DNA of 64,000 bases from Utricularia gibba (lineage: Eukaryota > Plantae > Magnoliophyta), in contig NEEC01000015.1 in assembly GCA_002189035.1 (NCBI GenBank), forward strand, positions 2,294,001 to 2,358,000, read 5' to 3'. Made by a program: the position numbers and the translations under genes. This document shows positions 7,891-64,000 of the stretch, one piece after another; within the stretch, counting starts at the first letter, position 1, and each line of letters begins with the position of its first letter. Below the pieces are notes generated by a model that saw only the letters and a program-made list of their open reading frames with translations, made no database searches and had not been told where the DNA came from.

Positions 7891-10845
7891 ATGGCGAAAT
7901 CCGACCCTAGCGGGAAGTCATGGCCGACGAATCCGGAATCCCCTGCGATGCCGCCGTCTTCATGGGCAAAGCGGACTGGGTTTCGCCCAAAATTTTCTGG
8001 GGAGACCAATGCAAGCGATTCAGGGCAGAATATTTCAGCGGCTGGGACGCCGCCGCCAGCGCAGGTTCAGGGGAAGCCTAAGCAGCCAGATAATGGCGTG
8101 GACCTTGAAGCCGGGAGGCCGAGGCCATCACCGACTACTAACGGGGAAGCGATGGGTGTCAAGGATAGAGCTAAAGAGAAGGAGAAGGAGAAGGAGCAAG
8201 AGCCGCCGGCGATTAAACGGAGGGAATCCGATGTTGTAAAGAATGCAGGAGCAAATGGGCCGATGCGAAATCGCCGGGCTGTGAATACCGAGGAGAGTGG
8301 GAGCGGTGATGTATTGGCCCAGTCGGGCATTGATGATGATGGGTTTATGGCGAGAAACTATCATATGAAATATGAGCTTAGAGATTCTCCAGGGCTTGGT
8401 GAGCCTCTAATTTCTTCTTAGATCGTGTTGGTGCAACTTTTATATCCTCTTGAGTTTAGATTATGTTTACTCAAGCTTCATAGATTGAAGTTGGATTTTA
8501 ACTTTAAAAGTTTTTCCCTTCAATCCTTTTTCAGTTCCAATCAGTTTCTATGGCGTTCAACATTTCCTTTCCATTTTGGGTTCGCTGATACTTACTCCAC
8601 TCGTGATCGTTCCTGCTATGGGAGGCACCTATGTGAGCACTTGTAATTCATTTCATTTTAAGCTTTCAACGTCCTCCCCTTTCTGATATTTTTCAACGGT
8701 AAGCTAACACTCTTAGGTCCTATTGTAGGACGATACAGCAAAGGTGGCTTCAACCGTGTTATTTATTTCAGGTGTTACGACACTACTACACATGTTTTTT
8801 GGTTCGAGACTACCCTTGATACAGGGTCCTTCATTTGTTTATCTTGCTCCAGTCCTTGCTCTCATCAACTCACCAGAATTCTTAGGCCTCACTGGAAATG
8901 TAACTAATCGCAGCTGTGGTTTTGTGTAATAACCGTTTATCAGCCTTTTGAAATGTGTACATATCATTTCAGAATTTCAAGCACATAATGAAAGAGTTAC
9001 AGGGGGCTATAATAGCTGCTTCAGCTTTCCAGGCCTTGCTTGGATACAGCGGTTTGATGAAAATACTACTCAGGTATAATGAATTATATAACTCTGGTCC
9101 TTTCAACTCAAGTACTTGTTTTTGCGTATAAATATCTTATCTTTCTACCCTTTTAGGTTAATAAATCCAGTCATTGTTGCACCAACTATAGCTGCAGTCG
9201 GACTTTCTTTCTACAGCTATGGTTTCCCACGCGTTGGCAGCTGCATTGAGATTGGTGTAGTGCAGATAGTTTTAGTTGTAATTTTTTCCCTTGTAAGTTC
9301 CATATCTTACCTTTCATTACCACATTTTGAATTGCGCTATACTTTATCGGCATTAGCAGCCTTGGAACAGAGCAGTTTGCTTTCTTTCTGTGAATGAAAA
9401 ATTGCCATTATGAAGCTTTAACACGATAAATGCTTATTTTGCAGTACCTTCGTAAAATATCCATTTTAGGTCATCGTGTCTTTCTAATCTATGCGGTGAG
9501 CTCATTTACTGTGAGAACTATTCTGATTTCTTGTCTATTCTTCATTGCTGATTTTTCCTTGTTTAAACTAGGTTCCACTTGGTCTGTTGATCACTTGGGC
9601 TATTGCCTTCCTTCTCACAGAAGCTGGACTATATGGCTACGATGGGTGTGATCCTAACATACCACCTTCAAATACAATATCTGACCACTGTAGAAATCAT
9701 GTAGCACGAGTTCGGGGTTGTCGGGTCGACGCATCTCATGCACTGAGATCATCGCCATGGTTTCGGTTTCCTTACCCTTTGCAGTGGGGTATCCCTGTTT
9801 TTAACTGGAAGATGGTCCTTGTAATGTGCTTTGTTTCAATCATTTCAACAGTAGATTCGGTAAGTCCAAAGAATGCAACTTTACCTATCTTCAATTATCA
9901 GTACATTCGTTTTTGTGTCAAGTTGTAATTTTTTTTCGTAATCTCAGGTGGGTTCATATCATGCATCATCATTGCTGGTGGCATCTAAGCCTCCGACTCC
10001 CGGTGTTGTTAGCCGTGGGATCGGATTAGAAGGGATCTCAAGTATTCTGGCTGGCCTTTGGGGCACTGGAACAGGGTCTGCAACCTTGACAGAGAATGTC
10101 CACACCATCGCCATCACCAAAATGGGAAGCCGGGGAGCTGTTGGACTGGGTGCAGTCGTCATGATCGTGTTATCATGTATAGGTATGGTAACTGGACAGT
10201 AAACTCATGAAGGGGGGTTCTTTTAACTATAATCGAAACTGTCTTCGTTCTTCACCAGGTAAAGTGGGAGGCTTCATTGCATCAATACCGGAAGTGATCG
10301 TTGCAGCCCTCCTGTGCTTCATGTGGGGGATGCTCACAGCTTTAGGCTTGTCCAACCTCCGGTACAGCGAGGCCGGCAGCTCAAGAAACATCATCATCAT
10401 TGGCTTGTCGCTCTTCTTTTCGCTCTCGGTGCCTGCTTACTTTCAGCAGTATGGTGTCTCACCCAACTCCTACTCATCCGTTCCCAGATATCTCCAGCCC
10501 TACACAGTCACCTCCCACGGCCCTGTTCGCACCAAGTCCGGCGGGGTATGCTTCACTATTATCTCTTTCTTTACGGTCTTTTGTGAGGCTGTGAAGTGTT
10601 GAAACCGTGTGTCATTTGGGCAGCTCAACTATGTGCTCAACACACTGTTTTCGCTTCACATGGTAGTGGCTTTCCTGGTAGGCATCATCCTCGACAACAC
10701 CGTACCAGGTAGCCCACAGGAACGAGGAGTGTACACCTGGTCGGAAGCGGAGGCTGCGAGAAGGGAGCCGGCTGTCTACGAAGACTATAAGCTCCCTTTT
10801 GGCGCCGGAAAGGTATTCCGGTGGGTAAAATGGGTCGGAATCTAG
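7891..10845 (+). CDS. NAT12: Nucleobase-ascorbate transporter 12 (NAT/NCS2 family), multi-exon
   Basis: N-terminus MPPSSWAKRTGFRPKFSGET, GSRLPLIQGPSF, NAT signature TENVHTIAITKMGSR and C-terminal LDNTVPGSPQERGVY. The introns I traced are canonical GT-AG. Confidence 0.95.
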
Positions 10846-11456
10846 AAATGTAATCCGTTTATCACTCTCCAGCGGGAACGACGAGGGCCGCCGGCCGCTT
10901 CCAGCTCCAGGTTAAGCTCCTCTGTGGTTGTATATTGCAGATTCTTCTTCTCTTCACGCTTCTCTTCCTCTTCTTGGCTTGGGACCGAACCTATTTACTT
11001 ACGTGGAAATTGTATAATTTTTTTAACTGCAAAAATTGCCTGATGAAATTGAATTCTTTTATTATTGAAATTGCTAAAATCGATATCTAATTAATTAAGG
11101 TTATATGAAAAAGTGAAGAAGGGTGTTTTGGTCAACGGGAATTGGTCCGCATCCGATTGAGTGATCCGGAACCTCTGCTTTGAGGTGGGTGTACTGGGTG
11201 AGTGAGTGAGGCGTGAGAATCCGGTGTGTTTCTTCTTGTTTCTGTCTCGTTGCTTCATCTGTCGTTTTTCATCCATTTCTTTTTCTCTGTTTTTCTTCGA
11301 GATCAGAGAATTGATCTCTTCGCATTTACTCACCCATCTGAATCCCCCAGTTGCCACGATTGACGACGGGTGTACTTGAGCAGAAACAACCCCACATCCA
11401 AAACCCACGCCAAGATCAACCTGTAGGTAGGTAAGTTTTCTTTGTCTGCCGTTTCA

Positions 11457-12073
11457 ATGGCGTCCATCGGGAACTGCAGTGTCACGCAGCAGATGTTGAG
11501 TCGACACGGCGCCGTTTCTGAACTCGGAATTGGGATGGGGGTTGCTGCTTCCGGCTACAAGAGGGGTTTGTTGGGTATCGATTTGAATGTTACCCCACCT
11601 GAGGAAGAATTAGACGAAGATGGAGGAGGAGAGGAGCCCCTCTTCGAGACGACGCATTGCTGCGATGGGGGGAAACCGGTGGTTGATTCAGGTGAGGAAA
11701 TGGGGGAACACGAGAAGAGACTTAGGCGTTGGAACGCGATTCTCGGGTCGCTGAGGATGCTTCAGCGGAGTACGAGAAGTCCCAAAATCGGAAACGGAAG
11801 ATGACCCCGATTCAGGAACTGCAGCCGAAGAAGAAGAATCCCACCCCACCCAGCCAGTGTTTCACTTCAGAGGAATCAAACAGCGGTTACCATTACCCGG
11901 TGCCCCCGCCTCCGCTCGTGAGTCGATCGACAAGGGGGAGGACGGTAGCGATGCCTACCAAGTATCGCGACTCCGTTCTCGACGTTCCATCGGAGGGGCC
12001 GTTCTTCGGAAGCCACACAACCGCGACACCCGCCACCGCCGCCGTCATCCCCAGCAAACGGAGGCCCAGGTGA
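11457..12073 (+). CDS. Uncharacterised nuclear protein A with EAR motif DLNVTP, RSTRGR..MPTKYRDSVL motif and basic C-terminus
   Basis: Two overlapping GC-rich ORFs (11442-11804 and 11729-12073) join either by one extra G at 11725-11726 (EKRLRALERD) or by a 74-nt intron 11692-11765 (GTGAGG...TTCAG). Three motifs are shared with the neighbouring gene. Confidence 0.65.
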
Positions 12074-12789
12074 TTAGAGCGTTGGTGGACCAGAGGCCAT
12101 CCACAGTAAAAATAAAAAAATGTAAAATCCCATCATTAGCAAGCAGCGGCAGCGGCAGCGGAAGATGCCGTTTTCACTGCACCATTTACCTTGTAATTCT
12201 GAAAGCATGGCCACTGATGTTCGATTCCTCCGCCATAACCAACCAACATCCACGGCTCCTGATGGGCGACATCTTGATCCATCAACGGCCCTGATTTCGT
12301 CATGGCGTTTATTTTGTTTTTATGGTGGGGACCACTCCTCTGTACTTGCATTATCTCCAACAGAATGCTAGACTTTGTAGGATAATTTTGTACAATTTTT
12401 CTTTCCCTTTCCTTCATTCACTTAATATCTGTTTTATTCATTATTAATCAGTCCAATTTAGTTCATTAAATCGGGACCCTGGTGGTCCCATCCTGCCACG
12501 TGGCAACATAACCAGTCATGAACGAACTGGTTGGGACGAAAGACGAAACCACCCCTCGCGCGATTCGGGGGATCGTGTGTGGACGCGTCTACGGAAATTG
12601 AATTGAATTGAGGGTTTGGGTTTGGGTTTAGGGTTTGATTAATTAATATTTAAAAAAACGTTTTACTAAAAAAAGGGTTCTGATATAAAAAAAAACTGAC
12701 TTGAAAGGGGAGTATTGACTATCGAGAGAGAAAAGTTTCAGAGCTTCAACTTGTGTTGTGTCGCCTCGGCCGGCCCCCTTTTCTTCCCC

Positions 12790-13373
12790 ATGTCTTCATT
12801 CCGTCACTGTCCCTCCCTCCTCCGCCGCGGATCCGCCTCGCAAATCTCCCTCCACAAGATTTTACACACGATCGTCACCTTACCACCGCCGCCGCAGTCC
12901 TCGGTTTCCAAATTCAGCGAATCCTTGGAACACAATTATGGCTTTTCCGCAGGGAACATCAGTAGACCGCGTCTCGCCTTCGACCTCAACGATTACTCCC
13001 CGGAAGGCGATAGTCACAGCCCCCAGATGAGTTCAAGCACCGTCACCGTCTCCGTCTCTCTCCCCGCCGGGATCCAGAAAACGGTGGACCAGAATGCAGT
13101 GTATGGGGGGATTCCGGCGCTGCGGAGGGAAGTTTGGCGCTCCTTATTGAAGCAGCGGAGCTGATTCTCGGTGAACCCGATGAATCGAGAGGATCCAATC
13201 CCAGGGGAAGAATAGTCCAGTCGCACCGCGAGGAAGCGGCGCCAGAAATCGGACGCGAGTATCCGGATTCTGCAGCGACGCGGATGACACGGCGGCGCTC
13301 GAGGGTTCTTCCCAGCAAGTACAAGGACTCGGTTCTGGAACCTCTGACTCCATCGAAGCGCAGCCGGAGGTGA
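12790..13373 (+). CDS. Uncharacterised nuclear protein B with EAR-like FDLNDYSP, LALLIEAAELI, RRRSRVLPSKYKDSVLEP and basic C-terminus
   Basis: ORFs 12715-13164 and 13134-13373 join if the G6 run at 13105-13110 is G7 (YGGDSGAAEGSLALLIEAAELI). Paralogous in motifs to gene A. Confidence 0.65.
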
Positions 13374-13832
13374 AGCAGATTTTCAGCTTTTTTTAATATT
13401 ATTTTTCTTTTAATATTTACATTTTCGTCGTGCCATTTAATTGCTCGATAGCAATCGGATTTATTGAAATGTCAATTTCGTGTAACACGGTGGACATAAA
13501 AAAGTGTGCTCTCAAATTGCTGCGGTTATAAAATAATAGAAAATAAATTAATCGTGAACCAGATAATCTGTGGTTTCGACACGTGGCAAGGAGAATCCGC
13601 TGTGGCCAGTGCCTTGGTCTACATTGGGCCAGAATATATTCATCCAATGAGGCAGGCCCGCTAACTTGTGTTGATCCACAGTCCAGCCCATGTTTTTTTT
13701 CACATACTGTCCACGTTCAGGTCCAGAGAACAACTACTTGAAGGCGCCTCACTCGGTGGCATTTCAACCTTATCTGCTTCGCCTCTCCTGGCGATTTCCG
13801 GTGTTTGCAGTTTGCAGTGAGAGCAACTGGCA

Positions 13833-16800
13833 ATGTCGAGCGAGAAAATTGATGATAATGGTGAGGAGGAGGTGAAGGAGTCGGGAAATGAACCTGAGAA
13901 ATCTGCGTCCGAGGCGGAGGAGGACACGGATTCTGAGTCAGACTCTGAGTCCGAGTCTGAGTCCGAAACGGAGAAAGCGTCGGAGCAACTTCCGTTAGCA
14001 TACACCAGACGCGATGGGACGACCAGAGATCTTCGGACTGAATTAGAAGTCGATGAAAATTCGCCGGAAATGAATGTGCGGCGGTTCATGAGTGTTCTGA
14101 ACTCCAAGGGATTGCGCAGGGCGCAGGACGAGGAGGATAAGAAGGAAAAGTACCTGGAAGACCTGTTCGATTTTCCGCCTGACCCAGAGAGGTGGCGGGA
14201 GGAGGATTTGAAGGAGTATTGGGCGGATGCTCCGATAGGGATGACGAAGCCCGGCTGGGACCCACACGACGTTGACGAGGAGGAGGTTGATATAATCAGT
14301 GATGAGATACTTGACGGCCGGGATCCTCCGATTGCGCCGTTCTATGTGCCGTATCGGAAGCCGTATCCGGCGATTCCTGACAATAATTATGATATTTCCA
14401 ATGCCAAGGCAGCAATTGAGGAGCTGGATAGGATTGAAGAATTTTTGACTTGGGTCAGCTACATTTTCCCCGATGGAAGCTCGTGAGTGAAGAATTCTGT
14501 TTTTGTGTTTTTTTTTTTTTTTGGTTTTGGATTCATGGAATTATGGTTATAAGTATGGGTGCATTGTTAATGTAGGTATGAAGGAACTGTTTGGGATGAT
14601 AGAGCTCATGGGAAAGGTGTCTTTGTTGCGGAGAATGGACTAGTGAGGTGATTCATTTAAACTATTCCACATATTTTCATTCGAATGCAGTCATAGACGG
14701 GTTCTTCTTGATTTCCTGTTTGATCACTGTGATGACTCTTATGTGCTTCATGTAAACTATGAGCTATGATTTCTAGGTATGAGGGAGAATGGCTGCAAAA
14801 TGATATGGATGGTCATGGAATTGTTGAAGTAGATATCCCTGTTCCTGAACCCATTCCAGGTTCAAAGTATGTAAATGTCTCACTTCGTGAATATTACAAT
14901 TCAGTGTGCACTGGTGGCGAATGGGTAGTCTCATAGGTTTTGATTTCTGCCTTCTCTAGGCTTGAGGCAAAGATGCGAGCTGAAGGAGGGGTTTTCTCGT
15001 ATGACTTCATGTCACCTGAAGACAGAAAGTGGCTTGACATGGATATTGAAGACAGTTTGCGTTTATCCAATGGAGAATACGAAATTCCTTTCTATGAGAA
15101 TGAAGAGTGGATCAAACATTTTGGGCAGAAACCGTAAGTTTATCTGGCTTTCATCTATAACGCATATTCCTTGTTTGAAGAGAGCCTTTCTAGCATACTG
15201 TTATGCTTTTGAGTATGATTTCCAGCTAGCTCCATCTGAAACACTTCTGGATGCTGTACGTTTTATTGTGAATTTGTGGCAGTGAGAAAGGTCGATATCG
15301 ATATGCTGGTCAATGGAAACTTGGGCGAATGCATGGCTGTGGTATATACCAAGTCAATGAACGAACAACTTGGGTGAGAATGCATCTTAAGACCTCCTGG
15401 AACTCGAGTATTAACCCTGTGTTATGTATGATAGTCGTCCTATGCTGTATTCTCATCTTTTGCGAGACAGGCAATACATACAATCAGTTCCTACTAGATC
15501 TGTTGGTGTTACTGATAACTTGTAATTGGCAAGTGGAAATAATATCCCTTTCTACCAATGTGAACAGGGCCGATTTTACTTTGGGGAGCTTTTGGAGGAT
15601 ACAACTGGTTGTGGTATTGACATATGCTCGGTAATTAGATTTTCTTTTTTTTTTCGCATCGACATTCTATATTTTCTAAAATGCCTCACTGATTTTGACT
15701 GAGAAACAATAGTACCTCAGATGCATGCAGGAATCGCTGAGGTTGCAGCAGCAAAGGCACGTATGTTTGTGAACAAGCCTGATGGAAGTGAGTTGACTTG
15801 CACCTCAACTTTGTATCCTATTTGTTTTTAATTTCTGGACTTTATTAGTGCTCCTTTTGTGCCTGAGGGTTATCCACTGAACACAACTCTGCTCATTCAT
15901 ACAGTGGTTAGAGAATATTATGGGCCATTTGGGGATCCTCAGCATGCTTATTTCTATGAGGAAGATGATGTTTGGATGGCTCCGGGGTTCATCAATCAGT
16001 TCTATGAAGTAATTTTTTTGCAAGTTCGAAAATTTGCTGTTAATCATGCTTATACAATATATAAACAATTTGCAGGTCCCAGATTTCTGGAAAACATATG
16101 TTCAAGAGGTGGACAAAGAGAGGCAGCTTTGGCTCAACTCCTTTTACAAAGCTCCACTTAGGCTCCCCATGCCTTCTGAACTTGAACATTGGTGGTCTAA
16201 CTGTAAGAATTCCGAACTCAATCAAATCACCCATCATCATTCTTCCATAAGTGTTAATGCTGTGTCTTTTCTTTTACACAGATGAGAAACCAGAATTTGT
16301 GCTTATTAATACGGATCCGGTGCCTGATCCTCAGGATCCATCCAAACTTATCTATAAAGAAGATCCATACATTCTGCACACCCCAACTGGAAGGCTAATA
16401 GATTTCGTGGAAGATGAGGAACATGGGATCCGTTTATTTTGGCTACCAGATCTCAAGGATGGGGAGGCTGTTGATCTTGACAAGGTCAGCTTCCTTCCCC
16501 TTGGATTTGATGAGTTTTATGGGAAGGGTGTGAGTGAACCCGATACGGCTTGGGTACGGTTTCTAAAAAATGCGCAAAACGCATTTAAAAGCCTTGGCGA
16601 ACGTCTAGAAAAGATAAAGGAGGAAACTAAGGCAGCCAGTGAAAAGAAGATGGCAGATTATAAGAAAGAACAGCAACTAATGGAAGAGGAGTCATCAGCC
16701 GAGAAAAAGCAGATTGCTGCTTTGGATGAGAGACTGAAGCAGATGCAGGAAGAGGCGGAAAAGAAAGTGGCACAAGAGGTCCCCAAGGAGGAAGGTATTC

Positions 16801-18937: not shown

Positions 18938-19762
18938 TCACCGACCCTTTTCTTCCCTTTCCTTGTTCCATTGCTCAATTCTAGCTCTCCTTTCCTCGCT
19001 TCCTTCCCTCGCCGGGCTTCGGCTCCTCCGCGGACTCCCACCGTGCCTTCTCCTGTCGCCTTCGTGCCTATGACTACCACCCCTTCGCCCGCCACCGCGA
19101 TAATCCCGCCGCTCATGATCCCTCTCCCTATCCCGCCTATTAGCGTGAGAGGGGCTAGCACTTCGGCTACGGCTCCTACGGCCCCAAAACCTAGTCTGCC
19201 TTCTTCCGAATAGTTTCTTCCTCAAATCCCGACCAATCATCTTAACGTGCATAAAATTGCAATACCCACCGCGAGCGCAGCTATCCTCCTCGTATTGTCT
19301 GCATGTGGCTTCACGGAAGTCCGTGACGGGGGAAAAATCGGCGATGATTGGACGCCCTGAGTAGAATCTTCCGGTCAAGGCGTTCAGAGCGGCGGCGGCA
19401 TGATCCTCCTCCTTGAAATGGACATACACGTTTCCGATCATGTGGTCAGCGAGATTGTCGCAGACGTTGAGGCTCTCGATCTCGCCGAATTTGTTGAGCT
19501 CCTCATAAATATCCTCGTAAAAGTCCTCGAAATGCTCCTGAATCTTGCGAGCCTCAATTGGCTGACCCTGAGCGTCCACACCGGGGGTTATCATATCAGG
19601 ACGCTGGTACATATTCGCCAGAAGAAGCGTCGGAGATATCGTCGGCCGGTTGTGAAGCCGTGAGCAGCGGTCACCGTGCCGACAAGCTCCGATCTTGAAA
19701 TAGAACGGGCAGTTCACCCGATCCTTCTCTGTTCCGAAGATCGAAGCCAAATGCTCTGCCAT
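18938..19762 (-). CDS. U2AF35: Splicing factor U2AF small subunit (U2AF35), intronless CDS
   Basis: [43 protein letters not shown], second CCCH zinc finger and RS-rich tail. Confidence 0.97.
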
Positions 19763-19841
19763 TGATCTCCAACCACTTCCACAAGATCCAAACGGCAAAA
19801 TCAATCGGAACGTCCGCACCCGACCGACGGACTGGAAACGC

Positions 19842-33169: not shown

Positions 33170-35666
<2,497 letters not shown>

Positions 35667-51581: not shown

Positions 51582-53924
51582 ATGGTTTCCGACGCCAGCA
51601 AGAAGAAGGCGGCACAGAAGAAGGCCGCGGCCGCCGCAAAGAGAGGAGGCAAGGCTTCGTCCTCAGCTTCGGTAGTTTCATCGGCTGAGAACGGAAGCAA
51701 AGTTGATAGTTTGGTCACCAGTGTTGCCGAGCTTCAGTTGTCTGATCGGACCTGTACTGGTGTTCTCTGCTCGCATCCATTGTCCAGAGATATTCGAGTG
51801 AGCTCCTAGATCATTTTACCCGTTAATGAAATCATTACTTATTTTCAGTGAACCTAGTTTTCGTCGAGGTTTATTTTTCTGGTGAATGAATGTGTGATTG
51901 ATTTTAAAATTTGTATTTTTAATCGTTTTTTGTTCTCCCGTACCGCGAATTTTCCTGTTGCATGCAAGAGAATTAGAAGTGATTGCCAAACTTTTTTTTT
52001 TTTTTTCTGTTCTCTTGCACTCGGATTTATAAGGAATTGTGTCTTTTGGTTTTTGTAGATAGAATCCCTTTCCCTGACTTTCCATGGCCATGACCTAATT
52101 GTTGACTCAGAGCTGGAACTCAATTACGGAAGGTATGGGGTTATTTTCTTTGAACTTGGAATTGCCAAGATCAAAACCTTAAATATATATTTAATTTTGC
52201 AGGCGTTATGGTCTGCTTGGGCTGAACGGCTGTGGGAAATCTACTCTTCTTGCGGCAATTGGTTGCAGAGAGCTCCCGATTCCAGAACATATGGACATCT
52301 ATCACCTTAGCAGGGAGATTGAAGCCTCTGACATGTCATCTCTTCAGGCTGTTATTAGCTGCGATGAGGAGAGACTGAGATTAGAAAAAGAAGCTGAAGC
52401 CTTGGCTGCACAGGTGCTTTTACACATACGTGGTTCAGTTGAGGCCTTTGTTTTCTTTTTATAGTATAGTAGCTTATTGCGAGATTCTATTCTTAGGACG
52501 ATGGTGGTGGAGAGCAACTTGAACGGATTTATGAGCGCTTGGAAGCAATGGATGCATCGACAGCTGAGAAGAGAGCTGCTGAAATACTGTTTGGCCTTGG
52601 ATTTACCAAGAAGATGCAAGAAAAGAAAACAAAGGATTTCTCTGGTGGTTGGAGGATGAGAATAGCTTTAGCAAGAGCTCTTTTCATGAACCCGACCATA
52701 TTGTTGCTAGATGAACCGACAAATCATCTAGGTATACATACTATGGATATAAGCACATATTCAGCTGCATTTCTCATTATTTGCTTCATCTTCAATCAGT
52801 TTCATGAGCAATTGTTTTTTCCTATGTGTGACGCTGCGTAATGTAGTTCACTTTATCCAATTGCAGATTTGGAAGCTTGTGTCTGGTTGGAGGAAACATT
52901 GAAGAAGTTCGACAGAATTTTAGTTGTCGTTTCTCATTCCCAGGACTTCCTGAATGGAGTCTGCACCAACATTATCCACATGCAAAGCAAGAAGCTAAAG
53001 CTTTATACCGGTAACTATGACCAGTATGTCCAGACTCGGTCTGAGCTTGAGGAGAACCAAATGAAACAGTACAAGTGGGAGCAGGACCAAATAGCTTCAA
53101 TGAAGGAGTACATTGCACGTTTTGGTCATGGTTCTGCAAAGCTTGCTCGTCAGGCTCAAAGCAAGGAGAAAACTCTGGCAAAGATGGAGAGGGGTGGCCT
53201 CACAGAGAAGGTTGTCAGGGATAAGGTCTTGGTTTTCCGATTTCAGGATGTGGGAAAACTCCCACCCCCTGTCCTTCAGTTTGTGGAAGTTTCCTTCGGC
53301 TACACTCCAGAGAATCTGATCTACAAGAACCTTGATTTTGGGGTGGACCTCGACTCCAGAGTAGCCCTCGTCGGACCCAATGGTGCTGGAAAAAGTACTC
53401 TGCTGAAGCTGATGTCAGGGGAACTAGTCCCTTCCGATGGAATGGTTCGTCGCCACAACCACTTGAGAATCGCACAGTTCCATCAGCATTTGGCCGAGAA
53501 ACTCGACATGGAAGTATCAGCTCTGCAATACATGTTGAATGAGTACCCTGGAAACGAGGAGGAGCGCATGAGAGCTGCTGTAGGAAAATTTGGCCTGAGT
53601 GGAAAAGCTCAAGTGATGCCGATGAAGAACCTGTCAGATGGACAAAGAAGCCGTGTCATTTTTGCATGGCTTGCTTACAGGCAGCCGCACCTGCTCCTCC
53701 TGGATGAGCCAACCAACCACCTGGACATCGAGACGATCGACTCCCTCGCCCAGGCCCTGAACGAGTGGGACGGCGGCATGGTCCTTGTGAGCCACGACTT
53801 CAGGCTCATAAACCAGGTAGCCCACGATATCTACGTGTGTGAAAACCAGAGCGTAACGCGATGGGAAGGCGACATCATGGACTTCAAGGAGCACTTGAAG
53901 AGCAAAACCGGGGTACCCAACTGA
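51582..53924 (+). CDS. ABCF1: ABC transporter F family member 1 (ABCF1, soluble ABC ATPase)
   Basis: [24 protein letters not shown], Walker [10 protein letters not shown] and GPNGAGKST, signatures FSGGW and LSDGQ, and [10 protein letters not shown] twice. Confidence 0.97.
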
Positions 53925-56859: not shown

Positions 56860-58080
56860 ATGTGCAGATCGGGAGTGGCGACCGAGGCTGCGGAACCTTC
56901 CAGAACGGCTCGCCGCGATAATCTCGCGTCGTCGAGGATGGAGGTGGAGAATCGACCGTCGCCGTCGAATAGCGGTGGTTTTACTCCTTCCGGGGGTGTG
57001 TCTGCCGCCGCTTCGGGATCCTATCTCCTCGACAGCTCCGTCGCGACCGGCTCCCTGTCTGGCGGATGCTCCCTGAGAATCTTGCAGGATATGTTGCCGG
57101 AGAATACGAAAATCTACGAATTTGCGGAGATTAGAGCCGCGACGAACAGTTTTCTCGGCACAAGACTATCTACATCCTCGGGGTCGTCGCAATCGTGGCG
57201 TTGCACAATTGGCGGCAAGGATGTGGTTGTTTTTCAGAGGAAATTAAGGAAATCGGTCTCGGAGCCGGATGTCCGGCGGAAACTGGCGTTGATTAGTCGA
57301 AGCCACTACACGAGCATCGTTAAGCTTCTCGGATGCTCCATCTCCGGGGAGCATATCTTCCTAGTCTACGAATTTGAGCGGGGGACCAACTTAGGGTTGT
57401 GTTTGAGGAACAAATTGAACCCTGAGTTCACAGTGCTTTCATCTTGGATGTCTCGGATGCAGATCGCCACAGACGTGGCGCACGGCCTCGATTACATCCA
57501 CAACACCGCTGGCCTCAGCATCGATATGGTCCACAAGCACGTCAAGAGCAGCGGTATCATCGTCACGGAGCCGTCCTTCAACGCAAAGATCTGCCATTTC
57601 GGCGCGTCGGAGCTCTGCGGTGACACCGATTCCACACGGGGCCCCATAGAGGGAGTACGAGGATACATGTCGCCGGAGTTCATGGCCACCGGAGTTCCCA
57701 CTCAGAAGTCCGACGTGTACGCATTCGGTGTTGTAATTCTCGAGCTGATGTCCGGACAGGAGCCTATGAAATTGAAATTCGATCGGATTTCGGGGGAGTG
57801 CATGTCAATTTCGTTGGTTGACACGGCGAGATCCGCCGTAGGCGGTGGTGCGGGATCTATCCGAACGTGGATAGACAAGCGGTTAAAGGATTCTTTTCCG
57901 GTTGAGGTCGCGGAGAAACTTCTGCGTGTGGCGCTGCAATGTGTTGAGGAGGATCCGGATAAGAGACCCGATATGAGATGGGTTGCGGGTAAGATCTCCA
58001 AGCTCTATTTAACTTCCAAAATTTGGTCGGATCGTGTTAAGCTCCCCTCTGAAATATCGGTTTCTTTAGGTCCCAGATAG
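56860..58080 (+). CDS. Receptor-like cytoplasmic (pseudo)kinase, At3g57120-like / LYK-related kinase domain, intronless
   Basis: LPENTKIYEFAEIRAATNSF, WMSRMQIATDVAHGLDYIH, VHKHVKSS, KICHFG, GVRGYMSPE, QKSDVYAFGV and C-terminal ISVSLGPR. No ectodomain or transmembrane segment. Confidence 0.9.
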   Translation: MCRSGVATEAAEPSRTARRDNLASSRMEVENRPSPSNSGGFTPSGGVSAAASGSYLLDSSVATGSLSGGCSLRILQDMLPENTKIYEFAEIRAATNSFLGTRLSTSSGSSQSWRCTIGGKDVVVFQRKLRKSVSEPDVRRKLALISRSHYTSIVKLLGCSISGEHIFLVYEFERGTNLGLCLRNKLNPEFTVLSSWMSRMQIATDVAHGLDYIHNTAGLSIDMVHKHVKSSGIIVTEPSFNAKICHFGASELCGDTDSTRGPIEGVRGYMSPEFMATGVPTQKSDVYAFGVVILELMSGQEPMKLKFDRISGECMSISLVDTARSAVGGGAGSIRTWIDKRLKDSFPVEVAEKLLRVALQCVEEDPDKRPDMRWVAGKISKLYLTSKIWSDRVKLPSEISVSLGPR

Positions 58081-58468: not shown

Positions 58469-61400
58469 CTAAACCATCTGCAGGTGAAGATCGGCGGCCT
58501 GCTGCGCGAGCTCCACCACCATGGCCTCGTCGAAGAACTTGTTGATGCTCACATCTTCAGACATTCCCTGGAAAAGCAACCCACCAATGTTTTTTGAGCT
58601 CGTGAAGTACGTGTCTGCAGAAGAAGGGAATGATTTTGAGGGGATGTAAAAAGTAGCACACCTTGCGTCGCCTAGTTTTCACCATGAACTCGCGTGCCAG
58701 ATGCTGGACTGGAGCCGGCTCCAGGGGGCGTAAAACAATGCTCTTGTCGAGCGGGTCTCCGGGTACAATGGCCCAGTGATCAAAGACAGACAAGCAAAAT
58801 GCCTGGCCTTGGGTGTGGTACCTCAGGTCTGTTTCGAAACCGAAGGATTCTATAACCGGCAAAAATGCCTGCAAGGATGATTATGGATATGTTATATCAT
58901 GACAGTGATACCATTCATAACAGATGTGATCGTACCTTCACGATGTAGGCGGGTGTTCCAGGCTGAGGAACATCAGCAGTGACATGGCCACGCCTACGAG
59001 ATAGCACCGTGTATATGGCAGAAACACAGTCCATTGGTGTTTGTATCTGACAATTTTCATTTGGCCGCAAAAAAAAACATCAGTCTTGCCCATTTTTTAA
59101 TGCAACGCTCCAGGAAGTAAATACGCATAACGAGAGACTGACCTCTACATAGTAAACCGGCTCCATTAGCCTGGGTGTAGCCATGAGAAAAGCTGAATAG
59201 GCCACACGACGTGCAGTTGGAATTATCTGACCAGTGCCGCGATGAAGTGGCTCAGGGGCAATTTTAGCATCAACTATCTTGAATTTGACATTTCGTATTG
59301 GTTCGTCACACAGAGGACCTTCTCGAGCACCCCACTGGAAACTGTCAACAGCATCGAACTTAAATATCCTACTAAGAAAGAAATGAGGTCACTAAAGGAG
59401 ACGGTTGAATCCCCAAAATTACCCTTGAACGATAGAATCCTTGACCGCATTGAGCAAACCCTTATCAACTTCACTTGATAATGTGTCATCGAGCAAGATG
59501 TTGGGTCCCTGAAAGTACATAAATCATGTCACAACCAAACATTTGAAAGGAATCGTAAGAACAACAACAGTGTATAATTTTCATTGACTGAAGGATATTA
59601 TACAAAGAACTCACCTGCTTATCAGGTCCAAATGCCCAAATTGACCTCGCCGCAAGCAAATCCCAGTCGTACTTGGTCTGGAAAAAATCACCAAGCTTTT
59701 TCCTTGGCCAATCAATGCTTACCACTCCATTCTCAATATCTTCAGCAAGCCCCCTTTCCAGTGGTTCCGCAATCTAAAACAGATTTTATTCAGAATATGA
59801 CTAAAAAGATCTATAATGTACTAATTTCTCACCATAGTAACTTTATTCTTCTTGTTTGGAGTTTCAGCAAAGCATTTCATGGATGAAGACTCCACAACTG
59901 TTTCACAGAATGAAACAACAGGATCCGCTACCTAAACACACACACACATAAACAAAAGATCATCAGTATAGGAAACATGTACCAAATATATGATTCAGCG
60001 GTGGAAACAGGAATAAAGCCAATCAGCACCTTGACCTCCACTTCTGAATAAAGCTCCCTGAGATCCTTCATTATGGAGTCCAGGTACAGTTCCCCAGTGC
60101 CTAAAATAGTGTGCTCACCGGATTCCTCGACTTTTGTAATTGCTAATGGGTAGCTCTTGCTTATTTTCCTGAGACCCTCAACCATTTTTGGCAGCTCACT
60201 AGGATTCAGAGGCTCGGTGGCAGTTTTCACAACTGGAAGGGTGTTGAACTGGAGTGGCCGGAATATATACACATCATCATCGTACTCTACATTACAAATT
60301 GTTGCTGTCTTCATGATAGAAGCATCCACGCCTTCAATGAGTACCCACGAACCAGGAGGAGCTTTGGTGATGGGAATCCTATAGCGAGCCTGATATACCC
60401 ATAACCTTGACACTTCTTTCAGTGTCATATCCTCCTCATCATCCGGTGAATAGCCTTCTCCCAAAACACGAACAGCTTGGCCCATCATAATTTCACCACT
60501 GTAGACCCTACCGAAGGCATCAAAGACACTACAATCAGATTTAGGGTATAACTTGGTTATGTTGACCATCAGGGGACCAGATGCATCACACTCCTCCATT
60601 GCCTGGTAGATTGTTGAATCCTTCGGGCCAGTATATATGTGCTCAACCTTCTGGGGGCAGCTTCTTTAGCCGATGGAACATGCTGAACGAGCATGTCTGT
60701 AAACCCTGTAGCACTACCGAAAACTGAGCTGCATGCTACTCTTAAAAGAGGCCTCACATTTAATCGATAGGCTGCATTACTCAATGTCACACCAAGTTCA
60801 GCAAGCTTAGCTTCCACACTTTTTTTGTGTTCTCCGATCACTTGGCTGTAAATCTTATAAAGTGGTTCAAGGATGAATTGAACGAATGAACGTTCTGTTC
60901 CACTAGAAGGTTGTTTCTTCTTGAAACTCCTGGTATCAGCATCATAGTAGAAATCCCCCAAAGTCGAGAAGCAAATTTATTAACATCAAACGAAATGCCA
61001 TGCAACTTCACATATAGCTTGGCAAACGATTGTAAGGTGAAGGACCATCCAGCAGTAGCACTAGCAAAACAAACATTTCCAATCGTGGGATCAACAAGCT
61101 GAACACCACCAGCAGTTGATGATGCAGCTGTTATATGATTGTTGATGACTTCAATGGTGTGCTTTAGCTTATGGTATGCTTCCTTGGGAGGCAACTTGAG
61201 CTCAGTTATTAACCTGTCAACCTATTGCATGATAATTTTATAAATAAATCAGTCTCTATAGACCCAAAAAAAAGCTGCAAATATGAACTCATTTGATGTC
61301 TTAACCTTATTTATCACCAAAACAATGGGGATGCGCTCTTGTATTGCATGGCGTATTGCTCTTTCTGTGTTCACCTATAAAAGACGCAAGCCTTAATTTC

Positions 61401-62273
61401 AAAGTATAACTTGTAACGAAAGAAATTCCAAAACGCCCGTTTCAAAACAAAGTTGGACAAGTGAATAGGGAAACCAATGGTCGCCAAATTAACAGCCAGC
61501 CCAACGAAAATAGAGATCCTAAGATTTACCATGAATCCTTCTGCTGCATCTACAACCAAAACGGCACCATCTGCGAGCCTCAATGCAGCACTCATCTCAT
61601 CAGAAAAGTTAACATGACCGGGTGTATCCATAATGTTGCAAAGGTATGACTTGGAATTGCTATCCTCAAGGACAAGCGACATAGGAATTGATTTTATAGA
61701 TATCCTTCTCTCCTGCTCATCAATCCTAGTGTCAGTGTACCTCATATGCTTCTCACTTTTCTGATCAAAGGTCGAAATATGATGAGTCTGCTCAACCAAC
61801 ATGTCCATGAAAGTTGTCTTTCCATGATGCAAATGCCCCACCAGAGCAACGTTCCTGACCAAGGTAGGGTTCGACATCAGACCCAAAAGGAACTCCGTTG
61901 AGACATAAGTGGACGAATCCTTGACCCCAAGTTCAAACTTGAGATTTCTCACTGGTTTAATTATGGGCTGTTCCAATGGCTGCTCATCTTCATCCATAAC
62001 TAAAGTTTCAACTTCTTCTCCATAGACCTCCTCAGCTGTTGGATAGTATTTCTTATCCTCAGCCAAGACAATTTGGTTATCGATATCTACATCCTCTGAA
62101 GTAGCCAGCCAGTTACTTGGCTTCCCAGCTCCATTCTCATAATCAGACATATTGTCCTCATCCTCTATCCTGTCATGGCGCTCTTCCTCTTCTTCCTCCC
62201 TGTCACTCTCTTGGTCCGATTCAATCTCCGGCCCAATGTAATTCCCGAACTCGTCATACAGATTATCATCCAT
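58469..62273 (-). CDS. SNU114: U5 snRNP 110/116-kDa GTPase Snu114/EFTUD2 (MEE5/GFA1/CLO)
   Basis: [73 protein letters not shown] and C-terminal [10 protein letters not shown]. Single-base homopolymer deletions at 60653-60657 and 60955-60959 break the frame. Confidence 0.97.
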
Positions 62274-64000
62274 CGCTTGAAACCTGAATAAACACACGAG
62301 TTGCATCATTAAAAAAAACACTCCTACTTAAGAACTAGTGACATAAAAGCAAATACCTAATTAAGAAAAATGCAGCAACAATATAAAACAAAATAGACCA
62401 AATTTCTCCGCGCACAGAGTCCCCGCGGAGAACGACGACCAAAAATGAAAGCTTACAGAAGCGCCGGGAATGCTAGGTTTTCGGCGGGGGAGAAAGGAGA
62501 GAAAGATCGACGAAGAGGAATTTACTTTTTTGCCTACCGAGGATGGAATCACCATGTTGGCGGGCCGCGTATAAAGCCCAACAACTCAACAGGGTCGCCA
62601 CGTACTCTCCAGAGCCCATTTTAATGACACCGACGGGCCACCTGCGATCCCCGGTTTCCCCACCGCGCAGACCGCCGCACATCTCCCCATAAATAAATAA
62701 AAAAAGTATTTTCCATGCCAAAATGATTACGTCACCTGAGGGAGGTGGTGACACCAGCATCGGGGTTATAAACGTAATCTTTAGGTTACTTGAAGTTGCC
62801 ATACTACCAATTTCCCGTAAATAAAGCTGACCGTACGGCGCTCCCCAATAAATCCCACTTCGCTTTTCCTTTCTTTTTTTTTTTTTCAATTTACTTACAA
62901 TTACAAAATTCCTTTCAGAATTTGGGGTTTAGGGTTTTGATAATTAGCAAAAAAAAAAATAATTAACGAAAGAAAACCCTAATACCAGAAACCCCACAGC
63001 GAGGTGGGCTACGGTTCCCAAGAGGATAAATATATCCAATAAAAAGAATAATTAAATTTTTATTCAGTAATCTACCAGTACAAACTGACAACCTCTATAC
63101 CTGCTGTGCCGCTGCCACCAAAACACCACCCCCCGCCTCTCCAGCTGCCCCCTTTCCTGCCTTCTTCACATATAATATACCATTTTATTTCCTTTTTTTT
63201 AATTACCAATTCCATTTATTGGAAATTATTAATGAACTATATATTTTTTTAATTTCAATGATGCATCACATCAGTTGGAGATTACTTGTTCTCAAATATC
63301 CCCATGGATTCATTGTTTCACGTGATTTGTTTCATGATTAAATTAATTTTTTTTATCAAATATATATAATTAAATAGAATTTTAAAATAATTTTTATTTT
63401 TAAAAAATTCAGATCCTCGGCTTCTATTTTACATTAAAAATGCGTCATTAATGTTGAATTAAATAGAATCCGAGTGGCGTGGGTGTGGGCTGTGCCCCTG
63501 GGGAGACCACTTGTGGCTACTGTGGTTGGGCTCGGTGGCACGACTCTGGCATTTGGTGGTGTTGCGCACAAAAGTGATGTGGTTAGAGTGACGGGCGTCA
63601 ACTTTTGACCATTCAGCGTTCTCCACGTCTGCTTACCGTCAACGGTTAGGTGACGGCGTTAGTGCTTATGGAAAATATCCATTTTTAATTTTTTTTTTCG
63701 AATTTTAGTAGCTCGTAATTAATATTCGTTCCCGTAGATGTGCGTCGAATAATCAGGTGAGAAGCAATCATTGTCCTACACTCTTCTCCACCCTTTCAGC
63801 AGCTCCTTCCTCCTGCCCAGCGGCAAAACTCGCCGGAGAAATTCTCCGATGGGGATCGCGCTCTTCTCCGTCGCGCTCAGGTGGTAAAGAAAAGAAGTCT
63901 CTTCTTTTCTATTTTCCGTTATGCGTGGTATGTGGTCACCACGTCCAAGAACTGGAGTTGCAGATTTGTAAGAGCTGCTGCACTTGTAAAATACATGGGG

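Follow-up and report, generated by a model that had tools for sequence, protein, structure and literature searches.

Two adjacent genes share three ordered motifs

We analysed a 64,000-nucleotide stretch of the Utricularia gibba genome (contig NEEC01000015.1, positions 2,294,001 to 2,358,000; hereafter the window, in whose own coordinates all positions are given), in which two small genes lie 0.7 kb apart on the same strand (+). Gene 1 (11457..12073, +) runs from an ATG at 11457 to a stop at 12073 and gene 2 (12790..13373, +) from an ATG at 12790 to a stop at 13373, as judged from open reading frames (ORFs) together with transcript contigs. The pair is flanked by the final exons of a transporter gene of the Xan_ur_permease type and by an acidic-protein gene that starts at 13833. 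An earlier reading of the letters without database searches, which we call the sequence-only reading, had proposed that the two products share three ordered motifs: a DLN box (IDLNVTP and FDLNDYSP), a central motif (RSTRGRTVAMPTKYRDSVLD and RMTRRRSRVLPSKYKDSVLE), and a basic tail (PSKRRPR and PSKRSRR). All six strings stand in the + strand translation, each in its place. The central motif resembles the N-terminus of the trithorax-type histone H3 lysine 4 (H3K4) methyltransferases ATX3, ATX4 and ATX5, and our interpretation of the pair is built around this likeness.

In gene 1, the DLN box IDLNVTP (11574..11594, +) has the canonical DLNxxP form of the ERF-associated amphiphilic repression (EAR) motif and directly follows KRGLLG, an arrangement shared with the orthologues (KRGLLNIDLNVAP); of these, P0011 and P0015 read IDLNVAP. 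The ATX3/4/5-like motif LVSRSTRGRTVAMPTKYRDSVLD lies at 11915..11983 (+), and the basic C-terminal tail PSKRRPR, a putative nuclear localisation signal, at 12050..12070 (+). Gene 2 encodes, in order, an N-terminal helix segment that we call island 1 (LLRRGSASQISLHKILHTIVTLPPP, 12817..12891, +; from a hidden Markov model (HMM) alignment), the box FDLNDYSP (12979..13002, +), which aligns to the EAR position of its relatives in a non-canonical form, a second helix segment or island 3 (SLALLIEAAELILGEPD, 13131..13181, +; from a profile match), the ATX3/4/5-like motif RMTRRRSRVLPSKYKDSVLEPL (13281..13346, +) and the tail PSKRSRR (13350..13370, +). The tails were read from the translation, and the ATX3/4/5-like motifs from translation, BLASTP and HMM.

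Compared by BLASTP, the C-terminal parts of the two proteins have 12 of 26 identities over the motif (E 1e-5), and the N-terminal parts, which hold the DLN regions, 9 of 24 (E 0.011). The shared motifs go beyond chance, because a profile built from just the two C-terminal pieces recovers 18 proteins at E<=1e-3 among 1.84 billion representatives, all of them from plants and 140-571 residues long.

Each gene is broken by one base in the window and transcribed as a single frame

As written in the window, a one-base frameshift splits the DLN half of each gene from its KY.DSVL half, and the two frames share an overlap of a few dozen bases. Gene 1 thus consists of an N part (11457-11747) and a C part (11747-12070, then a stop), with the first frame ending at a stop at 11804 and the motif frame open from 11729. 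The corresponding parts of gene 2 are 12790-13110 and 13110-13370 (then a stop), with the first frame's stop at 13164 and the motif frame open from 13014. Our database searches used these four pieces, and the joined proteins were compared with the family profile and placed in a tree.

We compared the interval 10900-13900 with cDNA-like contigs from four public runs, which belong to three studies and are recorded only as ‘RNA?’. The contigs behave as cDNA because they are confined to the genes and leave the spacers uncovered, because an X3 contig has a 22-A tail after 12242 that is absent from the genome, and because several contigs start with adapter-like loose ends. Both genes are covered and both are transcribed, as the sequence-only reading required of them. 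The 3' untranslated region of gene 1 occupies 12074..12377 (+), with poly(A) after 12242 in X3 and a longer X1 contig reaching 12377. Contigs of X1 and X3 begin at 11766, 11815 and 12792 with identical foreign letters (AGTGCAGTGCTCCGATATACGGG) that resemble a 5' library adapter; these positions are cDNA 5' ends, possibly truncated. The start at 12792 lies 2 bases inside the ATG of gene 2, and an X2 contig begins at 12739.

No contig over gene 1 or gene 2 contains a joint, and therefore both genes are intronless. Introns joining the two frames, for which many GT..AG combinations exist, were ruled out because the contigs lack joints and have a one-base insertion instead. In gene 1 this insertion falls at a run of three G (11745..11747, +), where the window is one G short of the X2 contig and breaks inside the island RRWNAILG|VAEDA; the extra G, behind 11744, is seen in run X2 only, which represents a second strain. 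In gene 2 it falls at a run of six G (13105..13110, +), and the extra G behind 13104 is present in X2 as well as in X1, whose contig equals the window in every other respect. Each inserted G takes translation out of the first frame and into that of the motif, and the corrected, single and intronless ORFs encode about 205 residues for gene 1 and about 194 for gene 2. The sequence-only reading had overlooked the broken frames; its two ORFs hold once one G is added to each.

Corrected gene 1 scores 53.7 bits against the family HMM and corrected gene 2 scores 80.5 bits in two stretches, and in both proteins the match spans the two sides of the corrected site. The gene 1 junction lies inside a conserved island, where the corrected WNAILGVAEDAS matches WNAVLEVAENAL of Paulownia and WIGLLEIAENAL of Perilla. 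The frameshift in gene 2 is a homopolymer error of the assembly, since the X1 contig carries the extra G and otherwise equals the window. That in gene 1 is probably an error of the same kind in a similar run, with a smaller chance of a true frameshift specific to the window's strain. The window thus holds two one-G deletions within 1.4 kb, each breaking a real, transcribed gene, and other apparent frameshifts or ‘pseudogenes’ in this assembly may be similar homopolymer errors.

Both proteins belong to an unnamed angiosperm family

Gene 1 and gene 2 belong to a conserved family of angiosperm proteins that has no name. A profile search with an alignment of 23 family members (A3) recovered 81 proteins from magnoliids (Persea, Aristolochia, Tasmannia), monocots (Musa, palms, Dioscorea, Spirodela, Ananas, an orchid and gingers) and many eudicots. 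Their database names are ‘hypothetical’, ‘uncharacterized’ or evidently spurious (CCDC96-like, HhH-GPD, SRRM3-like), the last group including a 262-residue Dioscorea alata member called ‘Histone-lysine N-methyltransferase protein’. The ESM Atlas clusters of the family consist of unnamed Streptophyta proteins. Pfam gives no domain in any part of gene 1 or gene 2, nor in any family member, and we found no name, Pfam family or publication for the family or its motif in the databases or in the literature, including searches with the motif strings. The family's lack of functional annotation, anticipated by the sequence-only reading, is thus borne out. No Brassicaceae or Poaceae member was among the matches of a search that scored only 8000 candidates picked by shared words, which does not establish that these plants lack it; such a lack in Brassicaceae and grasses could explain why the family is nameless. 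A word-based protein search with the 114-residue C-terminal ORF of gene 1 gave no match among proteins of 63-200 residues, with only 5 candidates scored.

The A3 alignment contains five ordered islands, which bear out the proposal that the motifs are conserved in orthologues. Island 1 (R.GSKAQMCL.KIL.IIS..PP) is the N-terminal helix; island 2 is an EAR-type box, most often RG.(D)IDLNLRLGPP; island 3 (EGYLGLLIEAA.LISG[ED]F.D) is the second helix; island 4 (ED.SPVVRSKRGR.QVLP.[KR][YF]RDSVLEP[WL]) is the ATX3/4/5-like motif; and island 5 is a basic tail ([ST]KRR.[RK]) at the extreme C-terminus. Both helices are amphipathic, and island 4 is a linear motif of basic and aromatic character, roughly 30 residues long. 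Longer members have the extra small blocks SSEGECDPK and SEITN.Q. Island 4 is the best conserved of the five, with R..R...P...DSV invariant in the 23 aligned members. The basic tail is present in 49 of 73 family members; we infer that it acts as a nuclear localisation signal, and the proteins are probably nuclear.

The EAR motif is LxLxL or DLNxxP by the definition in PMC6283911. Among the 73 members of at least 170 residues, 63 have a DLN or LxLxL element upstream of island 4, most often IDLNLRLG, and this box may recruit TOPLESS-type co-repressors. The sequence-only reading had taken both DLN boxes of the pair for EAR motifs, which fits gene 1 (DLNVTP matches DLNxxP); it does not fit gene 2, whose DLNDYSP has the spacing DLNxxxP and which has no LxLxL.

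The islands can be followed in both window proteins. Island 4 reads LVSRSTRGRTVAMPTKYRDSVLD in gene 1 and ATRMTRRRSRVLPSKYKDSVLEPL in gene 2, within HMM stretches of 47.7 and 46.5 bits, and island 5 is present in both tails. Island 1 is clear in gene 2 (RRGSASQISLHKILHTIVTLPPPP, 29.9 bits) and a faint remnant in gene 1 (MLSRHGAVSELGI), whose orthologues P0011 and P0015 retain SKAQMS.GKILDTIS. Island 3 appears in gene 2 as SLALLIEAAELILGEPDE and in gene 1 in a clade-specific form, RRWNAILGVAEDAS, like that of Paulownia (WNAVLEVAENAL), both becoming visible only after the one-base correction; its LLIEAA..ILG part is kept in both (LALLIEAAELILGE in gene 2, RRWNAILGVAED in gene 1). The two proteins had been described as divergent outside the three motifs, which stands except for the N-terminal island of gene 2 and the LLIEAA..ILG island of both.

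An AlphaFold2 model made on A3 for member P0016 has a mean predicted local distance difference test (pLDDT) of 55 and a predicted template modelling score (pTM) of 0.22, and its only confident elements are two isolated helices, residues 31-45 (pLDDT about 86) and 141-160, which are islands 1 and 3. Island 4 is unfolded in the model. Because of these low scores and the presence of only two helices, the family proteins are predicted to be disordered chains with short functional islands, and together with the empty Pfam result this agrees with the earlier statement that no folded domain can be recognised.

Several members depart from the common layout. P0002 (Papaver somniferum RZC76823.1, 571 residues) consists of two full family units in head-to-tail order, both with islands 1 to 4; it is either a genuine two-unit protein or an annotation that fuses an independent tandem duplicate. 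P0034 (Ilex paraguariensis CAK9161868.1, 411 residues), a motif-bearing cluster member named RING-CH-type domain-containing protein, may be a fusion model with a neighbour, and the Hibiscus members called ‘HhH-GPD base excision DNA repair family protein’ have probably acquired that label from a fused or neighbouring gene model.

Island 4 corresponds to a conserved motif at the N-terminus of ATX3/4/5

The sequence-only reading had proposed a similar motif at the N-termini of ATX3/4/5. We scanned contigs from Joint Genome Institute metagenomes, among which there is some plant DNA and cDNA, using a degenerate nucleotide pattern that encodes RGR..VLP.[KR][FY].DSV. Of the 45 loci found, 43 are ATX3/4/5-type N-termini encoding RPPLVRTSRGRVQVLPSRFNDSV, with the form RPP[LV]V[RK]TSRGR[VIT]QVLPSRFNDSV[LI]..W[RK]K or a divergent one (L029). 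They represent at least 10 distinct gene versions, both AT-rich and dicot-like and GC-rich and monocot-like. The other two matches are a long family-type protein (L033) and a chance bacterial match (L037).

In the ATX-type ORFs, the motif lies approximately 90-140 residues past an MII[KF]KR start, and its conserved form RPPLVRTSRGRVQVLPSRFNDSV[LI].NW[RK]K stands about 85-170 residues before a PWWP domain, which Pfam found downstream in all six of the ORFs tested. One locus (L012:543-3572) contains a complete ORF of 1010 residues with PWWP (208-301), PHD, PHD_2, ePHD (648-760) and SET (896-999), in which Pfam matched neither FYRN nor FYRC. This PWWP-PHD-ePHD-SET order without FYRN/FYRC is the architecture of ATX3/4/5, unlike that of ATX1/2 (PMC3457860). 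The proposed motif is therefore real and lies at the N-terminus as proposed, upstream of PWWP.

Aligned by hhalign, A3 and an alignment of eight ATX-type N-termini (A4) match with a probability of 96.9% and an E of 2e-10 over 30 columns, pairing SPVV-RSKRGRnQVLP.kYRDSVLEP with PPlV-rTSRGRvqVLPSRFNDSVid.W. In the opposite direction, an HMM of the ATX N-termini searched against all six-frame ORFs of the window ranks gene 1 first (E 1.1e-3) and gene 2 second (E 2.7e-3). The family consensus is far closer to the ATX motif than is either diverged window copy. On these profile comparisons, island 4 is homologous to the ATX3/4/5 N-terminal motif. A protein of 505-530 residues represented by L033:727-2241 (-), P0054 and P0055 has the motif PLVRSKRGRNQVLP[LV]RFRDSVLEPWKR, which is intermediate between KY.DSVLEP of the family and RF.DSV..W[RK]K of ATX; it also has an Aux/IAA-like box, LALRLGLPL, and lacks the basic KRR tail.

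The likeness may extend beyond the motif. Two more ATX N-terminal blocks are colinear with and weakly similar to family blocks (KSQM..LKR against SKAQMCLKK, and LNLLGEVAAGVIP against LGLLIEAAKLISG); paired by eye, ATX MIIKRNLKSQMPSLKRC lies against SKAQMCLKKIL of island 1 and YYPLNLLGEVAAGVIP against GYLGLLIEAAKLISG of island 3. A relaxed hhalign comparison continues across the second pairing, and the alignment it gives next begins at the first. Guided tests on slices score modestly above shuffles (12.4 vs 7.1±1.8 and 9.9 vs 5.4±1.3) for pairings that were picked post hoc, and unguided hhalign upstream of the motif is not significant, with 21 of 150 column shuffles reaching its score. AlphaFold2 predicts no helices in the ATX N-terminus, unlike family islands 1 and 3. 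That the whole family arose from an ATX3/4/5 first exon, or the reverse, is thus a possibility only.

A search for long ATX-like proteins with residues 232-281 of P0002 returned family members only, among 21 candidates of <=999 residues, a range uninformative for ATX. Comparison of the motif region and of the ATX N-terminal profile with solved structures gave chance ribosomal-protein matches only (E 0.56 and 1.3). Likenesses of the motif to the H4 tail, the PIP box, the WDR5 Win and WBM peptides and the AT-hook were considered by eye and dropped, as key consensus positions misfit.

A motif shared by two otherwise different protein classes could also be a generic element that contacts the nucleosome, DNA or an importin, in which case the two classes would have tethering to chromatin or the nucleus in common instead of one specific partner, and the function of the family would be unrelated to H3K4 methylation. 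Its basic character (R..RGR), its position in disordered sequence in both families and the lack of any known specific partner are consistent with such a role. However, the 30 conserved columns include the non-basic QVLP, [YF].DSV[LI] and W and are far more specific than a basic patch, and the pattern scan found the motif only in the two protein classes, apart from the one chance bacterial match. The AT-hook consensus has the core RGRP, and the core of our motif lacks this proline. We consider a generic element unlikely.

The tandem pair is older than the split of several Lamiales lineages

We placed the joined proteins in a quick maximum-likelihood tree of 44 rows, picked by hand from the matches with cluster duplicates and fragments omitted. 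Gene 1 groups with Paulownia Pfo_007339 and a 268-residue Perilla protein (SH-aLRT 99), and gene 2 falls in the main Lamiales clade (SH-aLRT 88); the tree thus places the source of the window in Lamiales, as a species whose genome is very compact. A gene 1-type copy followed by a gene 2-type copy on the same strand, both single-exon, occurs also in Paulownia (L047: 1015-1986 and 10001-10957) and in Perilla (L048: 2509-3315 and 10001-10531), in the same order. The duplication is thus older than the split of these Lamiales lineages, since the tandem recurs in both. Next to the gene 2-type member of Paulownia fortunei (CM033109.1) lies a DEMETER-type gene (L047:15651-20957, -; >1093 residues, RRM_DME), possibly a conserved neighbourhood.

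The two clades have kept different islands. The gene 1 clade retains DLNxxP and has changed VLP to AMP in the motif, and in the window copy island 1 is nearly lost while the orthologues keep SKAQMS.GKIL. The gene 2 clade retains islands 1, 3, 4 and 5, and its EAR box is eroding. From this distribution, functions seem to have been split between the Lamiales copies, with gene 1 bearing a canonical DLNxxP and degenerate helices and gene 2 bearing the helices and a decaying EAR box.

Apart from the inserted G, the second strain (X2) differs from the window by 7-8 single bases per gene. It also lacks 12 bases at 12955, an in-frame deletion of 4 codons just upstream of the DLN box of gene 2. Polymorphisms within the motif occur in gene 1 only, none in gene 2, and affect variable positions only; one of them, T70N, restores the MPNKY of the orthologues.

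Other genes in the window

The Xan_ur_permease match (nucleobase-ascorbate transporter type) at 10207-10599 (+) is the exon that ends the upstream neighbour (E 1.9e-10), and transcript contigs of that gene end near 11040. Pfam places other genes at 18938-19840 (-), 33816-34823 (-), 52869-53921 (+), 56860-58077 (+) and 61371-62318 (-), and these comprise a CCCH zinc finger plus RRM protein, two protein kinases, an ABC-F type ATPase and an EFTUD2/Snu114-like GTPase. Gene spacing in the window is very compact.

A possible role in opposing H3K4 methylation

Starting from the gene structure, transcription, family membership, conservation, predicted disorder and motif homology established above, we tentatively favour the idea, which we hold to be a substantial possibility though somewhat short of an even one, that the family proteins are EAR-bearing adaptors and/or decoys that use the ATX3/4/5 docking motif and oppose H3K4 methylation. 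The motif would dock on a partner or chromatin surface that is also used by the ATX3/4/5 N-terminus. The EAR box would then bring TOPLESS-type co-repressors to the docking site, and/or the small protein would compete with ATX3/4/5 for it; by either route, H3K4 methylation at shared targets would be opposed. The factors connecting ATX3 with chromatin are unclear according to a 2026 study (PMC13084085). A strongly conserved 30-residue motif at the N-terminus of ATX3/4/5 that is also found beside an EAR box in an independent, widespread family of small proteins offers a tangible way into the targeting of ATX3/4/5. Competition of the small proteins for the docking site, if it occurs, would add a new layer of negative control over H3K4 methylation.

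Several observations weigh against this proposal. The EAR-like island is absent from 10 of the 73 members, almost all of them asterids and mainly Lamiales relatives of gene 2, which have FELK, LELN, FDSK and similar forms instead; EAR repression cannot be the sole function of the family because of this loss. The box of gene 2 is itself non-canonical. Both window copies have lost family-invariant residues of the motif, with RRR for RGR in gene 2 and AMP for VLP in gene 1. They are also the most divergent copies in the tree (terminal branch lengths 0.95 and 1.49, where the median is 0.34), the G that restores gene 1 is known from the second strain only, and the strain comparison, with 10 non-synonymous and 6 synonymous changes, indicates weak constraint. 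Finally, the papers on ATX3/4/5 targeting that we consulted neither mention the motif nor give it a function, and no partner of it is known for either family.

The loss of the EAR island in some members bears on whether the proteins are pure decoys, similar to microproteins, that occupy the partner of the ATX3/4/5 motif or bind ATX3/4/5 itself and for which the EAR-like box is dispensable. The 10 members that lost the box retained the motif, which is the best conserved island of the family, invariant at R..R...P...DSV in the 23 aligned members, and significantly similar to that of ATX3/4/5. However, proteins of 170-370 residues with four other conserved islands exceed what a decoy needs, and a strong IDLNLRLG box is kept in most members. 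A complex prediction for an ATX3-like N-terminus (170 residues) with P0016 gave an interface score (ipSAE) of 0.00; the predictor did not use the alignments, and the result lends a decoy no support and is evidence neither for nor against binding. We regard a pure decoy as rather improbable.

The divergence of the window copies could instead mean that both genes are in decay, as pseudogenes or near-neutral remnants, and that their frameshifts are real. The interrupted ORFs, the long branches, the lost family-invariant residues and the 10 non-synonymous to 6 synonymous strain changes would all agree with decay. However, a transcript contig that equals the window in all else lacks the frameshift of gene 2, and the second strain lacks that of gene 1. 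The two genes are transcribed and polyadenylated, the 12-base strain indel is in frame, polymorphisms in the motif fall on variable positions only, and all islands are still recognisable. We consider decay very unlikely.

Returning to the adaptor and decoy proposal, a stronger form of it, to which we give only a small chance, is that the family is a dedicated ATX3/4/5 antagonist. The proteins would combine the enzymes' own N-terminal targeting motif with a TOPLESS-recruiting EAR box and so turn a docking site for H3K4 methylation into one for co-repression; an ATX3/4/5 first exon may be the origin of the family or at least of its motif. If this were true, the shared motif would identify the long-sought targeting interface of ATX3/4/5.

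Comparison with known systems

The closest comparison is with ATX3/4/5 (SDG14/16/29-type) themselves. Both protein classes share approximately 30 residues, P-[VL]-V-R-[ST]-x-RGR-x-QVLP-x-[KR]-[YF]-x-DSV-[LI]-[ED]-x-W, and in both these residues lie in sequence predicted to be disordered. In contrast to the enzymes, the family proteins have no PWWP, PHD, ePHD or SET domain and so are not trithorax members. Their motif stands near the C-terminus, followed only by the basic tail, and they have an EAR-type box that is absent from the ATX N-termini.

Domain I of Aux/IAA proteins is an EAR motif of the LxLxLP type. The family box IDLNLRLGPP (LALRLGLPL in L033) resembles a DLN-type box fused to the LRLGLP of Aux/IAA type. 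The family lacks Aux/IAA domains II-IV, however, and the boxes of the window copies are reduced to IDLNVTP and FDLNDYSP.

Plant microProteins, for example LITTLE ZIPPER and MIF, offer another parallel. In the strict sense they are small single-domain proteins that inactivate a larger relative by heterodimerising with it through an interaction domain common to both; here too a small protein has one interaction element in common with a large multidomain regulator, whose action it could disturb. The family proteins differ in having about 170-370 residues (194-205 in the window genes) and in carrying several additional conserved islands. What they share with ATX3/4/5 is a linear motif rather than a dimerisation domain, and the complex predicted with the ATX N-terminus (ipSAE 0.00) speaks neither for nor against a heterodimer. 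The family is too large and composite for microProteins in the strict sense.

NINJA, TIE/SPEAR and ECAP proteins are EAR adaptors that do not bind DNA and bridge to TOPLESS. The family resembles them in being disordered, in having no DNA-binding domain, and in combining an LxLxL or DLNxxP box with a separate short docking module. Pfam is empty for the family and we found no sequence relationship to these adaptors, and the docking module here is a motif of the ATX3/4/5 type, not a region that binds JAZ, TCP or MYB proteins. While the adaptor design itself is already known, what appears to be new in this family is such an EAR-adaptor-like design with a new docking module.

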